From Diplonema japonicum (taxonomy: Eukaryota; Protista; Euglenozoa: Diplonemea): a stretch of 64,000 nt of DNA. Location of the stretch: NCBI GenBank assembly GCA_964019335.1, contig OZ025715.1, positions 431,621 to 495,620 on the forward strand, read 5' to 3'. Shown here piece by piece: positions 59,733-64,000 of the stretch. Numbering within the stretch: position 1 is the stretch's first letter; every line of letters begins with the position of its first letter. The position numbers and the translations under genes are program-made. The notes under the pieces were generated by a model. It had not been told where the DNA came from, did not search any database, and saw nothing but the letters and a program-made list of their open reading frames with translations.

Positions 59733-60244
59733 TTTTTTTTCAGTTATTTGAGTAGCTCGTCAGGTCCCGTAATATGACGAAAAACTTCGATACGGCACGG
59801 ACAGGGTAATTGGGTTGCCTGTTATCGACTTTGTTTCAATTCAAAAGTCGGGTGGCGCATGGCAGCTGACCGTGGGCTTGTCCTGGGGGGGCTCGCCAGC
59901 TGTTGAAGTCATGTCCATCCGAAGCTGAGCTCTTGCGTGTACTCCTGCTTGGTGCCTTTTCGTGCGAGGATATCTGCTGTCTCGTTTCCCTCCACCCCGC
60001 AGTGGCTGGGTATGTAGCAGCAGGTTATGCGGTTCCCTCTCTTCAGCAGCTCGTGCAGGTGGCTCCAGACCCTGTTCGTAATGCTTTCTGGTTGTCGTGC
60101 TGGCCCCTGCTTCAATTTCTGCAGACAAGACATCGAGTCTGTCAGGATGTTGATCTGCACATCGTTCTTTCCGGTTTTCAACAGCTGGATGAGTGCTTCC
60201 TCCATCGCCGTGAGTTCTGCTTGGAAGCTATCGCCTCCAAATGG
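59733..60244 (-). mobile_element. Non-LTR retrotransposon remnant (Ingi/I-group-type RNase H, 3' tail, short poly(A))
   Basis: Minus strand reads SFQAELTAMEEAL...ILTDSMSCL...IPSHCGVEGNETADILARKG (RNase H E, D, H, D motifs). It is cut at its 5' side at the SL exon. A T8 run at about 59733-59740 would be the poly(A). Confidence 0.8.
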
Positions 60245-60282
60245 ACCAACGATTCTAAAGCTACAGTTTCTGTACTTTATTG
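60245..60282 (+). other. Genomic copy of the spliced-leader (mini-exon) sequence, 38 nt
   Basis: ACCAACGATTCTAAAGCTACAGTTTCTGTACTTTATTG. The 3' block CAGTTTCTGTACTTTATTG is the kinetoplastid/diplonemid SL end, and the 5' part matches the diplonemid AACCAACGATT type as I recall it. Confidence 0.9.
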
Positions 60283-60454
60283 GTCGTTCGTGTTCTGCTG
60301 GTGCCTGCCGCCTCTGCCTGGGTTGCCGCTGCGTCCGTCGTCCGTCGTCGCCGTCGTCCGGGGGGGTTGTTTTGCCCGTCGGCCTGCCCGCCGCTCAACG
60401 AAAGGATCCCCTCCCCCCCAACACACACTATAAAACAAAAAAAAAAAAAAAAAA

Positions 60455-61951
60455 ATGGATCCAAGACGACTCGCAGGAGGAGGTGACCGCAGCCGCAGCC
60501 GCAGCCCGCAGGAGCAAGCCCGCAGCCCGCAGCACACGGCGCCGAGACCCACCCAACCAGGCAATCTGGTTGGGCAGTATGAATCCCCACCCCCTAGATC
60601 CCCCCACCCCCCTTTAGAAAAAAAAAATAATAAAATAAAAAAATCACTAGCAGAGACCGCGGTTTTGACCGCCGCTGCTACAGCCACGGCCGCCCCAGCC
60701 GCCCTGAACGCCGCAGCCGACCCTGCCGCCCTGATCGCCGCAACTGAGACCGCCGCAGCCGCCCCTGCCGCAGCCACGACCGCCGCGACCACGACCCCTG
60801 CAGCCGACCCTGCTATTGTTGAAGAGGGAGGAAAAGAGGGAGAAAAAAAGGGGTGGGTACTGGTGTATGGTGAACACCCTCCCGGGTTGAGGACGGGCCC
60901 GGCCCCTGCCTTCCCGAAAGCCCTGCTTTCAGGAAAGTGGGAGGCCCTGTCTGGGAACTCAGGGAGGGAGACCCTCCAATACGGGTGCCGGTGGGAGGGG
61001 ACGAACGCCAAGGTGCGCCCCACCACGGGGATCCCAGGGGGGGCGGAGGGGTGGGTGAGGGAGGTGGCCGCCGCCGCAGGGCTCGAGGTGGTCCCCAACC
61101 AGGTACTTGTCAACAAGTACAAGTCTGGTTGTGGGATTGCCGCCCACAAGGACGACGCGAGGCTGGGACCGATTGTCCTAGTCCTCTCGTACGGAGCCGA
61201 GACCACAATGGTCATGAGGAGGGGGGACAGGGTGGCGAAATACCTGGTGCCCCCCTTCTCATGGGCATTGTTGGAAGGTGAAGCGAGACACCAGTGGACG
61301 CACCACATCCCGTCCGGGATGTCCACTGGTGTCAGGGTGTCGATCACCCTGCGTGCGGTAGGCCCCAAGCTCACCCGCACACCCCAGGAAGACCCATCCC
61401 CTGGGTTAACAGACGAACCCCCTTTTTTAGATCCCCTTTTTTGTGGGCAAGGGGGGGTGGCACTCCCAAGAGAGGATAGTGCCCCACCCGCCCCCTTTTT
61501 TTTTTTAGAACCCTCTTCGGAGGAAAACAGACCCTCTTCGGAGGAAAACAGAGAGAAAGGGGAAGAGGTGGCACTCCCGAGAGAGGGTGGTGCTCCTCCC
61601 CCCCATTTGTCCCCCCCTTTTTCATTTTTAGAGCCCTCTCCAGAGGAACCCTCCACGGAGGTAAAAAACAGACCCTCTTCGGAGGAAAACAGAGAGAGAG
61701 GGGAAGAGGTGGCACTCCCGAGAGAGGGTAGTGTTCCTCCCCCCCATTCGTCCCCCCCTTTTTCTTTTATAGAGCCCTCTCCAGAACCCTCCACGGAGGT
61801 GAAAAACAGACCCTCTTCGGAGGAAAAAAGGCAGAGGGAGAGACAGCACACCCGAGAGAAGGTAGTGCCCCTCCCTCTCTGCCCCCCATTTTTTCTGGAC
61901 CCTCTACGGAGGTGTACACCCTGGTCCCCAAGGGCCGGGGGCTTTTTTTGA
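60455..61951 (+). CDS. Element ORF1: Ala-rich linker + AlkB-family 2OG-Fe(II) dioxygenase domain (about 60850-61365) + repeat-derived tail
   Basis: RETLQYG, LVNKY, IAAHKD (HxD), WTHHIP (distal H), RVSITLR (RxSxTxR). Confidence 0.8.
   Translation: MDPRRLAGGGDRSRSRSPQEQARSPQHTAPRPTQPGNLVGQYESPPPRSPHPPLEKKNNKIKKSLAETAVLTAAATATAAPAALNAAADPAALIAATETAAAAPAAATTAATTTPAADPAIVEEGGKEGEKKGWVLVYGEHPPGLRTGPAPAFPKALLSGKWEALSGNSGRETLQYGCRWEGTNAKVRPTTGIPGGAEGWVREVAAAAGLEVVPNQVLVNKYKSGCGIAAHKDDARLGPIVLVLSYGAETTMVMRRGDRVAKYLVPPFSWALLEGEARHQWTHHIPSGMSTGVRVSITLRAVGPKLTRTPQEDPSPGLTDEPPFLDPLFCGQGGVALPREDSAPPAPFFFLEPSSEENRPSSEENREKGEEVALPREGGAPPPHLSPPFSFLEPSPEEPSTEVKNRPSSEENRERGEEVALPREGSVPPPHSSPPFSFIEPSPEPSTEVKNRPSSEEKRQRERQHTREKVVPLPLCPPFFLDPLRRCTPWSPRAGGFF
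61450..61915. repeat. About 3.5 degenerate tandem units of 110-140 bp built from small hairpins
   Basis: gtggcactccc at about 61457, 61568 and 61709, degenerate at about 61843. CCTC-NNNN-GAGG occurs eight times. Confidence 0.85.
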
Positions 61952-63534
61952 GGGTGGAAGGGAAAGAAAAAAAAAAAACAAACAAGGAGGAACCTTTTTT
62001 CTTTTCAAACAACCAGGGGGACCCAGCACCCACCCCCACTGCCCGCCAAGGTGTGGTTGGGGCGGAGGCTGCGGGCGACGTGAGAGCACCACTGCACACC
62101 CTTGTGAGAAGACAGAAAAGAGCCCCCTGGATTGCCATGGGTGGCAGGGAACCTAAGCCAGCGCCCAAGCGGAAGAAGAACAGGAGGAGGCACAGGAGCG
62201 AAACGGCCCTTCAGAGGCGTCGGGAGAAGAGGACCAAGGCGAGGGAGGGGGCGAGGGAGGCTGCCAGACAGGAGAAGAAAAGGCACCGTCGTGCGAGGAA
62301 AGAAGGGAGGAGGAGGGCCCGCAGAGAGGAACACGAGGCCGCCCTGGAACAGAAGCCAGATGACCCTGCAATGGGGCTGAAGCGGACCGAGGTGGGAACG
62401 CCTGGAGCCCAACCCCTGGCACCCAGAATCCCGGCACCTGGGGCTGCAACCGGCACAAGGAGGCACCGCAGACGGACGGGACACAGCAAGGAAGGGGTGA
62501 GATGGGAGCACCTGGGGGCGTGGGCCTGGGTCGCCCTGGTCTCCCTCTTGCTGATCCCAGGGGTGAGGCAGGTGCTGGGGGCGGGCATCGGGATGGCCCC
62601 CTCCTTCCTGCATGCGGCAGTGTTGTGGAAGAGGCCGGGGAGCGACAGGAGGACCACCCGCAGGTCAAGGGTACAGGTGGGGCCCCGAGGGGATGAATGG
62701 TCCGCCGGGGAGCTCGCTTGGCTAGCAGTAGGGGGCACTCTGGTGGGAAGCACTTCAGTTTGGATAGGGGGGCTGATGTCGCTCTGGGCCATGTCGGAAG
62801 TGATGGTGGGGAAAGCTGGTGCTGACCCGACCCAGAGATTCGGACCGGTAAAGCTGAGGAAGACAAGACGCGGATCGAGAGGTCACTACCTGCCGGTGTA
62901 CTTGGGCCCGCCTAGAAGCTCAAGACGCAGAAAAAAGAAGGAGGACGCCAAGCAAGCGGCGAAGGAACGAGCCGAGACGGAGGATAAGCTCTTTCAGGCC
63001 GAACACCTGGACCCCTTTGCGGACTTGACGCTGGCAGGGGACGCGTTGCAAGGAGGTGGTGACCCTCCCCCCATGGATTTGGATGATGAGCACACGGAGG
63101 CGCAGAAGGAGGGGGAAAAAGAAGGAACAGACAAACATCAATGCCGGATGGAAGGCTGCTCTTTCCGCACCAGTGTGGCAAGCTGTCTAGTTAAACACCT
63201 CAATGCGGTCCACCATCATTTTGTGAAACAAGAGCAGGCGAGGAACATGAAGGTGAACCTCTGTGGAACGTGTGCTGCGGCGTGCTCGTCGAACCAGACG
63301 CACTGTGCACTACACAGGCAGCGGAATCTGTGGAACCCCGACAAACAACCCAGGGCCGGCAAGTCAGTGGACGAGATCATGAAGAGCTTCAAGCTGACGA
63401 GGAGATCGACGAGATCCCGGAGAGCGTTCTGAGGAGACTGGACCTCGAGAGGTGCCTGGTGTGCAGGGGCTGTGTGTGGAAGGGTCAGGGGTGCCACGAC
63501 GAGTGCAAAAAGGCGGTGCGAAGGGAAGGGGAAT
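61912..63534 (+). pseudogene. Element ORF2 N-terminus: Arg-rich region, two hydrophobic segments, zinc fingers; apparent frameshift near 63390
   Basis: ORF 61912-63432. The -1 frame continues EIDEIPESVLRRLDLERCLVCRGCVWKGQGCHDECKK up to the 8-mer array. Confidence 0.55.
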
Positions 63535-64000
63535 CCGCAAACCCGCAAACCCGCAAACCCGCAAACCCGCAAACCCGCAAACCCGCAAACCCGCAAACCC
63601 GCAAACCCGCAAACCCGCAAACCCGCAAACCCGCAAACCCGCAAACCCGCAAACCCGCAAACCCGCAAACCCGCAAACCCGCAAACCCGCAAACCCGCAA
63701 ACCCGCAAACCCGCAAACCCGCAAACCCGCAAACCCGCAAACCCGCAAACCCGCAAACCCGCAAACCCGCAAACCCGCAAACCCGCAAACCCGCAAACCC
63801 GCAAACCCGCAAACCCGCAAACCCGCAAACCCGCAAACCCGCAAACCCGCAAACCCGCAAACCCGCAAACCCGCAAACCCGCAAACCCGCAAACCCGCAA
63901 ACCCGCAAACCCGCAAACCCGCAAACCCGCAAACCCGCAAACCCGCAAACCCGCAAACCCGCAAACCCGCAAACCCGCAAACCCGCAAACCCGCAAACCC
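63535..64000. repeat. Perfect 8-bp tandem repeat (CCCGCAAA)n / (TTTGCGGG)n, about 58 copies, runs off the window
   Basis: Read directly; no variant units seen. Confidence 0.98.

Follow-up and report, generated by a model that had tools for sequence, protein, structure and literature searches.

What is an AlkB-type dioxygenase doing beside the terminal repeats of a Diplonema japonicum chromosome, in a unit that begins with a spliced leader (SL)? The question is raised by a window of 64,000 nucleotides (nt), the whole stretch of DNA analysed here, which is the final 64 kb of its contig (C68), the window end being the contig end. The initial annotation of this stretch proposed a retrotransposon family with its own AlkB domain, and in this respect it was right: in intact copies elsewhere in the genome, AlkB shares one open frame with a reverse transcriptase (RT) and a restriction-like endonuclease (RLE). 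By its domain content and predicted folds, the element is an RLE-type retrotransposon without long terminal repeats (non-LTR), similar to long interspersed nuclear elements (LINEs), with AlkB and OTU as accessory domains. The best explanation overall, to which we assign a probability of roughly 0.6, is that of a telomere-specific non-LTR element whose AlkB domain would act on the element's own RNA or ribonucleoprotein. Literature searches combining AlkB with non-LTR elements, AlkB domain with retrotransposon, and D. japonicum with retrotransposon returned no description of such an element. Its hosts, the diplonemids, are very abundant and little-studied marine protists.

The AlkB domain

The open reading frame (ORF) at 60455-61951 (+) encodes 498 amino acids (aa) and matches the Pfam profile 2OG-FeII_Oxy_2 (PF13532) over residues 167-300 with an E-value of 1.3e-12. 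This profile search had been proposed as a check by the initial annotation and was passed, with 48.8 bits for the window copy and 50.7 bits for an intact copy against a curated cut-off of 31.2 bits. The four motifs that had been described as intact were all located:

60854..61363 (+): AlkB-family 2-oxoglutarate/Fe(II) dioxygenase domain, delimited by Pfam, PDB sequence match, alignment, structure model and Foldseek
61112-61120 (+): NKY, the NxY motif, from motif reading
61145-61153 (+): HKD, the HxD iron ligands, from motif reading
61301-61303 (+): distal His, within WTHH, from motif reading
61334-61354 (+): RVSITLR, the RxxxxxR motif, from motif reading

The iron triad (H, D, H), both 2-oxoglutarate-binding Arg residues and the Tyr of NxY are invariant in an alignment of 60 sequences, made up of the domain and 59 relatives, and the window copy carries a private Tyr-to-Cys change in the domain at 60986-60988. 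For the domain of an intact copy, the AlphaFold model (predicted local distance difference test score, pLDDT, 89; predicted template modelling score, pTM, 0.81) retrieved only AlkB-family structures at a Foldseek probability of 1.0, with template modelling (TM) scores of about 0.6, as befits the double-stranded β-helix fold. These are ALKBH6, ALKBH8, NMAD-1, ALKBH2, ALKBH3, Ofd2, ALKBH5 and E. coli AlkB. Among proteins of solved structure, the best sequence match is the AlkB domain of human ALKBH8 (E 9e-9), with S. pombe Ofd2 and ALKBH3 also among the closest. Motifs, profile and predicted fold together confirm the window domain as an AlkB-family domain with a complete set of catalytic residues. 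The match is far beyond chance, given that a six-frame tblastn search of the same genome with the AlkB ORF returned more than 100 matches, and these also answer the question of copy number that had been posed for the ORF, which is multicopy and not single-copy.

Architecture of intact copies

Intact copies are about 10-10.7 kb long and consist of the SL, a 5′ untranslated region (UTR), one ORF of about 2,800 aa, a T-rich 3′ UTR of about 750 nt that contains a 26-nt repeat of variable extent, and poly(A). Single ORFs of 2,819 and 2,866 aa are found in copies at C31 and C9, and a second subfamily, repeated in tandem every 10,659 bp at an end of C24, likewise has AlkB, OTU and RT in one open frame. 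The order along the ORF is AlkB, repeats with a basic region, zinc fingers, OTU cysteine protease, zinc knuckles, RT, CCHC with an R2-type RLE, and a long C-terminal tail. Pfam recovers AlkB, OTU and RVT_1 in this order (RVT_1 E 3e-16), and the DGNC...NHYE motif of OTU, the YLDD motif of RT, several zinc fingers and the long tail can be recognised by eye. The AlkB ORF had been presented as a separate ORF1; this has to be given up, as the apparent ORF1/ORF2 split in the window is due to a 1-nt deletion in an A-run at 61818-61823.

The endonuclease follows the RT and shows the pattern CCHC..RH[DN]..E..RPAD..D..K, conserved in an intact copy and 24 relatives. A model of the CCHC and RLE region has a pLDDT of 93, and its best seven PDB matches are all R2 retrotransposon proteins; a plain sequence search of the RLE region against the PDB gave noise only, a question that the search by fold resolved. 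Among solved structures the RT is nearest to R2 by sequence, and against NCBIfam the polyprotein yielded nothing beyond a weak match to group II intron RT. The other hallmarks of RLE-bearing non-LTR elements are present as well, namely a YxDD RT, no LTRs, 3′ poly(A) and 5′-truncated copies stacked head to tail.

The tail after the endonuclease comprises about 750 aa (residues ~2070-2819; L014 1288-3530, −), in which acidic stretches of low complexity occur together with three modules that resemble one another and measure about 60 aa each. No Pfam family matches the tail, and with 26% identity it is the part in which the subfamilies differ most.

Contigs of two sequencing runs cover the whole element, including the OTU part that has no counterpart in the window copy. 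The kind of both runs is unrecorded, and their RNA nature was deduced from an SL depth about 1,000 times the flanking depth; this RNA-like depth is suggestive of an expressed element.

Position at the chromosome ends

The element family occupies at least 80 distinct loci. With distances taken from published chromosome lengths, 75 of the 80 lie within 50 kb of a chromosome end (19% expected from the genome; p 6e-48) and 73 within 20 kb, and every one of the 75 end-proximal loci points outward. The contig ends themselves consist of (CCGCAAAC)n, seen at the ends of C1, C3, C4, C5, C9 and C31 and at loci L026-L055, always on the strand that runs 5′ to 3′ outward and with the same polarity at all ends examined; (TTAGGG)4 does not occur in the assembly. 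As this strand ends 3′ at the terminus, the G-rich strand runs inward, which is opposite to canonical telomeres. The element is thus telomere-specific: it is confined to ends, has a fixed orientation and adjoins the terminal repeat.

Several observations accompany this pattern. Five loci lie far from ends (C115:77610, C30:333367, C64:166680, C20:399582 and C89:191523) and may be scaffold joins, fused ends or internal telomere-like sites; the internal copy on C30 is followed by telomeric repeats (L033). At L028 (C65:499074-501613) the poly(A) of the element gives way to T7 and then to (GCGGGTTT)3, in which the telomeric repeat is inverted. A candidate TERT was found at C41:533974-534300 (Telomerase_RBD, 28.4 bits, in an ORF of 1,086 aa). 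In the genome note for D. japonicum YPF1604 (peDipJapo1.1; PMC13598402), retrotransposons, transposable elements and AlkB are not mentioned and telomeres are absent from the main text; a full-text count gives one occurrence of "telomeric repeat", outside the main text.

Conservation and origin of the AlkB domain

Whether AlkB matters to the element can be judged from the two subfamilies, compared here by aa identity and, for two domains, by the ratio of nonsynonymous to synonymous substitution rates (dN/dS):

AlkB, subfamily 1 against subfamily 2: 72% identity, no gaps, dN/dS 0.23
RT, subfamily 1 against subfamily 2: 55% identity, dN/dS 0.24
RLE, subfamily 1 against subfamily 2: 41% identity
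OTU, subfamily 1 against subfamily 2: 33% identity

By these sequence comparisons AlkB is the best-conserved domain of the polyprotein and an old, integral and selected part of the element. Extra enzymatic domains are rare in LINE-like elements and each points to a host barrier to overcome; that AlkB is kept more tightly than RT is a reason to see nucleic-acid methylation as such a barrier in diplonemids. One copy, L018 (C9, 9770-9560, −), is of subfamily 1 except for its N-terminal 70 aa, which match subfamily 2, and this chimera implies that the subfamilies recombine.

The host genome has about 15 other AlkB-family loci, which lie inside chromosomes, and the closest of these paralogues is 26% identical to the element AlkB. 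In a quick tree, the element AlkBs of D. japonicum and D. papillatum form one clade (Shimodaira-Hasegawa-like approximate likelihood ratio test, SH-aLRT, 93) apart from the host paralogues. The clade falls among small stand-alone AlkB proteins and not with the host gene at the C5 locus, in which AlkB comes late in a long ORF. The phylogeny asked for by the initial annotation therefore gives its answer: the element AlkB does not group with host ALKBH paralogues. In a search of the domain against 1.84 billion representative proteins there was no match below 1e-30. The best matches were small stand-alone metagenomic AlkBs with 30-40% identity and long D. papillatum proteins, and the names of the nearest stand-alone proteins gave no clue to a donor lineage.

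In the D. papillatum proteins P0204, P0205 and P0070, AlkB, OTU and RVT_1 occupy the same positions as in the D. japonicum element, and AlkB identity across the elements of the two species is 39%. The shared clade implies that AlkB was in the element before the lineages diverged, or that it moved with the element. GenBank names the D. papillatum AlkB polyproteins (P0063, P0070, P0204, P0205; KAJ94...) either "SLACS 132 kDa protein" or "tRNA (carboxymethyluridine(34)-5-O)-methyltransferase". In the genome paper of D. papillatum, "a dozen AlkB-type genes" are taken to be host demethylases or regulators (PMC10161547), and the public annotation can now be corrected: some of this dozen are retroelement polyproteins carrying one of these two labels. 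Two distant metagenomic relatives are fusions as well: P0164 joins AlkB to an mRNA cap guanine-N7 methyltransferase, and P0168 joins it to FtsJ-like and N6/N4 methyltransferase domains. These fusions link the subgroup of the element's AlkB to enzymes of cap and RNA methylation.

Spliced leader and poly(A) at the ends of copies

All copies examined start with the SL, while their upstream flanks are unrelated, and at 24 of 25 distinct 5′ junctions the SL is kept to nt 1-3. The 5′ end takes two forms: a 121-nt GT...AG segment comes after the SL in one, and in the other the SL is joined directly to GATCCCC (60405 in the window), the base after the AG, so that these copies look like the spliced form fixed in DNA. 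At L041 (C58:505072-508368) the SL is followed by a duplicate of its last 16 nt, as expected of a product of re-trans-splicing at the AG inside a DNA-encoded SL. Odd SL heads are also found at L035, L042 and L055, and in some copies scrambled SL 5′ pieces (CGATTCTAAA plus CCAACG...) lie between poly(A) and the repeats.

The 3′ ends of 30 copies were inspected. In about 10 of them poly(A) runs directly into CCCGCAAAC repeats, in five the two are separated by a short filler that is in some cases sequence from inside the element, six continue into a 5′-truncated copy and four into the SL of the next copy. The recurrent poly(A)/CCCGCAAAC junction and the outward loci confined to ends are what site-specific insertion leaves behind. 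The SL halves that would flank a SLACS-type insertion are not found, as the upstream flanks at the 25 junctions are unrelated and the 3′ ends abut repeats or other copies. The initial annotation had called the unit SL-associated; in the sense of SLACS, CZAR and CRE this does not apply, since the whole SL stands only at the element's own 5′ end and not inside SL RNA genes, and the insertion is telomeric.

A scan of the window with Rfam families at gathering thresholds gave no match, from which it follows that the SL with the GT...AG segment is not a recognised SL RNA, and a genome search with the two together recovered only element 5′ ends among the 40 candidates scored. No tandem array of SL RNA genes was seen among the matches listed. 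The SL 20-mer occurs 216 times in the genome, dispersed over the chromosomes, and the SL also heads sequences other than the AlkB element (L011 580, L042), which suggests a wider retroposition of trans-spliced RNAs.

Proposed mechanism

The template for new copies would be the mature trans-spliced and polyadenylated mRNA, a proposal based on the SL heads, the two splice forms and the duplication at L041. The RLE may then nick the G/T-rich strand of the telomeric repeat, and the resulting ...GGGTTT-3′ end would pair with the poly(A) tail and prime reverse transcription. The junctions of poly(A) with the repeat fit an insertion into the telomeric repeat by such a nick.

Within this scheme the most likely role of the AlkB domain, at about even odds and by analogy with known enzymes, would be that of an oxidative demethylase acting in cis on the RNA or ribonucleoprotein of the element. 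Its task would be to clear base methylation at which the RT stalls or by which the RNA is marked for the host, and its candidate substrates are the cap-proximal methylations of the SL, of the cap-4 type, or 1-methyladenosine (m1A), 3-methylcytidine (m3C) and N6-methyladenosine (m6A). Precedents exist in two systems. The AlkB of an orchid Ty3/Gypsy element, so far the one retrotransposon AlkB to have been assayed, is an RNA-binding m6A demethylase (PMC9289625), and plant Flexiviridae replicases carry AlkB and then OTU ahead of the polymerase (PMC544882). In kinetoplastids the SL cap 4 contains N6,N6,2′-O-trimethyladenosine (m6,6Am) at nt 1 and 3,2′-O-dimethyluridine (m3Um) at nt 4 (PMC11417388); both are modified on the Watson-Crick face and should stall RT. 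Demethylation of the element RNA is proposed because of these precedents and because the SL is copied to nt 1-3, past any marks of the cap-4 type.

A more far-reaching version goes as follows. AlkB would be a cap-proximal eraser of SL-cap base methylation, and perhaps of other marks on its own mRNA, that lets the RT copy the SL to its first nt. By this means a LINE family would have become the standing subtelomere of nearly every chromosome, with a terminal repeat of reversed polarity, and the elements might share in end maintenance. This version is a minority bet and rather unlikely, because the cap-4 argument is borrowed and because SL-headed sequences without AlkB exist. The element is nonetheless tractable for asking how RTs handle a hypermethylated SL cap, since its copies are SL-headed, polyadenylated and telomeric.

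Several points weigh against an AlkB domain acting on the element's own RNA within a telomere-specific element. The closest solved folds are those of ALKBH6 and ALKBH8 and not of classical RNA or DNA demethylases, with ALKBH2, ALKBH3 and ALKBH5 close behind. The cap-4 chemistry comes from kinetoplastids (PMC11417388) and not from the diplonemid SL, and read-through of the SL may not need AlkB in cis, as sequences such as L011 and L042 are SL-headed without it. The synonymous rate (dS) is lower in the AlkB region than elsewhere (0.92 against about 1.5), and together with the chimeric N-terminus of L018 this means that AlkB conservation may be inflated by recombination. In addition, the two runs were taken as RNA by inference and not by record, and the window copy is itself incapable of transposition.

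Possible alternative roles of AlkB

AlkB could instead act on DNA or chromatin at the insertion site, be it telomeric DNA (with N6-methyladenine, 6mA, as an example), the new complementary DNA or a chromatin protein, and thereby open the telomeric target for nicking and priming. Demethylation of 6mA is attributed to NMAD-1- and ALKBH4-type enzymes, and action on chromatin proteins has been reported for Ofd2 or ALKBH1. The strictly telomeric position of the element would suit such a role, as would the presence of NMAD-1, Ofd2 and the double-stranded DNA enzyme ALKBH2 among the best structural matches. Structural matches do not tell substrates apart, however, methylation of the telomere is itself an assumption, and the known precedents in retroelements and viruses act on RNA (PMC9289625, PMC544882). 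We consider this role unlikely, though it has to be taken seriously.

It is improbable that the domain is an ALKBH8- or ALKBH6-like enzyme with tRNA, another RNA of the cell or a protein as its substrate, or that it serves as a general eraser directed at the host and not at the element's own template. Human ALKBH8 does provide the best solved sequence match (E 9e-9, to its AlkB domain), ALKBH6 and ALKBH8 are the best fold matches, and D. papillatum copies are annotated in GenBank as the tRNA methyltransferase named above. Yet Pfam finds neither an RRM nor a methyltransferase domain beside AlkB in intact copies, the element clade lies with small stand-alone AlkBs and not with the C5-locus host gene, and non-LTR elements have no known need for tRNA.

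The two weakest readings can be dealt with briefly. That AlkB is a passenger, a fragment of a host gene caught by chance and of no benefit to the element, draws on the fact that non-LTR elements do pick up host sequence and that about 15 AlkB-family loci were at hand, but is very improbable for the most conserved domain of the polyprotein, with a dN/dS of 0.23 and invariant catalytic residues, which keeps its position in the elements of a second species at only 39% identity and whose closest host paralogue is only 26% identical. Hardly any credence is left for the literal earlier model, a two-ORF element of the SLACS/CZAR/CRE kind residing in SL RNA genes with AlkB as its ORF1 protein: the two ORFs and the SL exon at the start in the window, and the SLACS label of the D. 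papillatum relatives, would speak for it, but intact copies have one ORF, split in the window by the 1-nt deletion, the SL is complete and 5′ only with no remainder past the 3′ end, and copies are flanked by telomeric repeats, by the poly(A) of another copy or by unrelated DNA. For the copies examined, the single ORF and the 25 junctions with the SL at the 5′ end only refute this model.

The window copy and its decay

The copy in the window is 96-97% identical to intact copies. It lies in a GC-rich unit that had been described as running from the SL exon through a tandem repeat to a zinc-finger ORF, and this description is accurate, with GC content rising to 0.59-0.67. Its features and flanks are the following:

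59909..60241 (−): RNase H fragment of an unrelated retroelement, 5′-truncated, in the flank outside the element (Pfam RNase_H PF00075, E 1.7e-9)
60246..60283 (+): spliced leader, 38 of 39 nt from SL nt 2, the 5′ end of the element (SL comparison)
60284..60404 (+): 121-nt GT...AG segment of the 5′ UTR (two junction forms; BLAST against L014 resumes at 60404)
60405..60454 (+): remaining 5′ UTR, with an A-run directly before the start codon (aligned to intact copy L014)
60455..61951 (+): N-terminal part of the polyprotein, 498 aa, with low-complexity region, AlkB and 47-aa repeats (ORF, Pfam)
61524..61875 (+): 141-nt tandem repeat, 2.6 copies, encoding the 47-aa repeats (repeat search)
61818..61823 (+): A-run with 6 A against 7 A in intact copies, a frameshift (alignment with L011)
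61912..63432 (+): continuation of the polyprotein in a shifted frame, with Arg/Lys-rich region, hydrophobic stretch and C2H2-like zinc fingers (96.5% identical to L014)
63411..63412 (+): junction of a 640-nt deletion, with the OTU protease domain lost and the frame shifted (alignment with intact copies)
63412..63534 (+): zinc-knuckle remnant preceding RT, CLVCRGCVWKGQGCHDEC (alignment with intact copies)
63535..64000 (+): (CCGCAAAC)58, the terminal chromosome repeat, joined directly to the truncated element and running to the contig end (repeat search)

The window copy is dead: it has two frameshifts, has lost OTU, is cut before the RT and is capped by telomeric repeats. It ends at 63534 without RT, endonuclease, 3′ UTR or poly(A), and the tail of the ORF at 60455-61951 is out of frame downstream of the 1-nt deletion. 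Both lesions can be seen against other copies in the sequencing runs, in which the extra A at 61818-61823 is present and from whose contigs the sequence extends from 63411 into OTU. Contigs of a deep run hold many further joints of element to repeat, at varied positions, so that the capping of truncated copies must be common. Run contigs also show joints of the SL to 61963; these were discounted as other mRNAs that match an A-rich stretch by chance.

When compared with the Diplonema-type SL (PMC3795323), the SL of the window agrees at 36 of the 38 retained nt and differs at two positions. The number of 141-nt repeat units differs among element copies. The RNase H fragment, which abuts the SL head of the AlkB element, comes from a retroelement family whose ORFs measure about 1,430 aa and for which the genome gave at least 150 matches, most of them in chromosome interiors.

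Comparison with known systems

Relatives of the RT-RLE module number in the thousands among marine eukaryotes and metagenomes. The top 120 matches are mostly unnamed eukaryotic or metagenomic proteins with 31-46% identity, and among the matches listed AlkB occurs in none of the relatives but the D. papillatum family. R2 shares with the Diplonema element the single ORF, site-specific insertion and target-primed reverse transcription, the last of which is proposed for Diplonema; its RT is the nearest among solved structures, and the model of the zinc knuckle and RLE matches R2Tg, R2Pm and R2Bm. R2 differs in its target, 28S ribosomal DNA, in its length of about 1,100 aa and in being without AlkB, OTU and SL.

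SLACS, CZAR and CRE1-2 resemble the element in their Euglenozoan hosts, in an RT followed by CCHC and RLE, in poly(A) and in N-terminal zinc fingers. Their target is the SL exon of SL RNA genes, which they enter between nt 11 and 12, and they are not known to have either AlkB or OTU. The Diplonema element, by contrast, has the whole SL for its 5′ end and telomeres for its target, and it possesses both domains; the comparison is one of architecture.

The telomere-specific LINEs TRAS and SART of Bombyx, GilM and GilT of Giardia and HeT-A and TART of Drosophila likewise form head-to-tail arrays at chromosome ends, in fixed orientation and in or next to telomeric repeats. HeT-A and TART point the other way, with poly(A) toward the centromere, and TRAS and SART use an apurinic/apyrimidinic (AP) endonuclease. 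None of these LINEs is known to carry AlkB, OTU or an SL.

Among retrotransposons that encode their own AlkB-family enzyme, the orchid Ty3/Gypsy element with an ALKBH5-like ORF, whose product removes m6A in vitro, is the closest parallel (PMC9289625). It is an LTR element that gained AlkB recently, as an additional ORF and from a plant ALKBH, whereas the Diplonema element is non-LTR and has an old AlkB, shared by two species at 39% identity, that is fused to the N-terminus of the polyprotein and has no close host source. The replicases of Flexiviridae (Tymovirales) combine AlkB, an OTU-like cysteine protease and then a polymerase in one polyprotein, as the element does, but belong to plant RNA viruses with methyltransferase, helicase and RNA-dependent RNA polymerase (PMC544882). 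This likeness is one of convergent layout, in the order of domains, and the arrangement of AlkB followed by OTU has arisen independently. The RLE-type non-LTR class is already known; what is new here is a telomere-specific, SL-headed member of it with AlkB and OTU. With it, the association of RNA demethylases with selfish replicons, known from plant RNA viruses and a single orchid LTR family, reaches non-LTR elements and the Euglenozoa as well.

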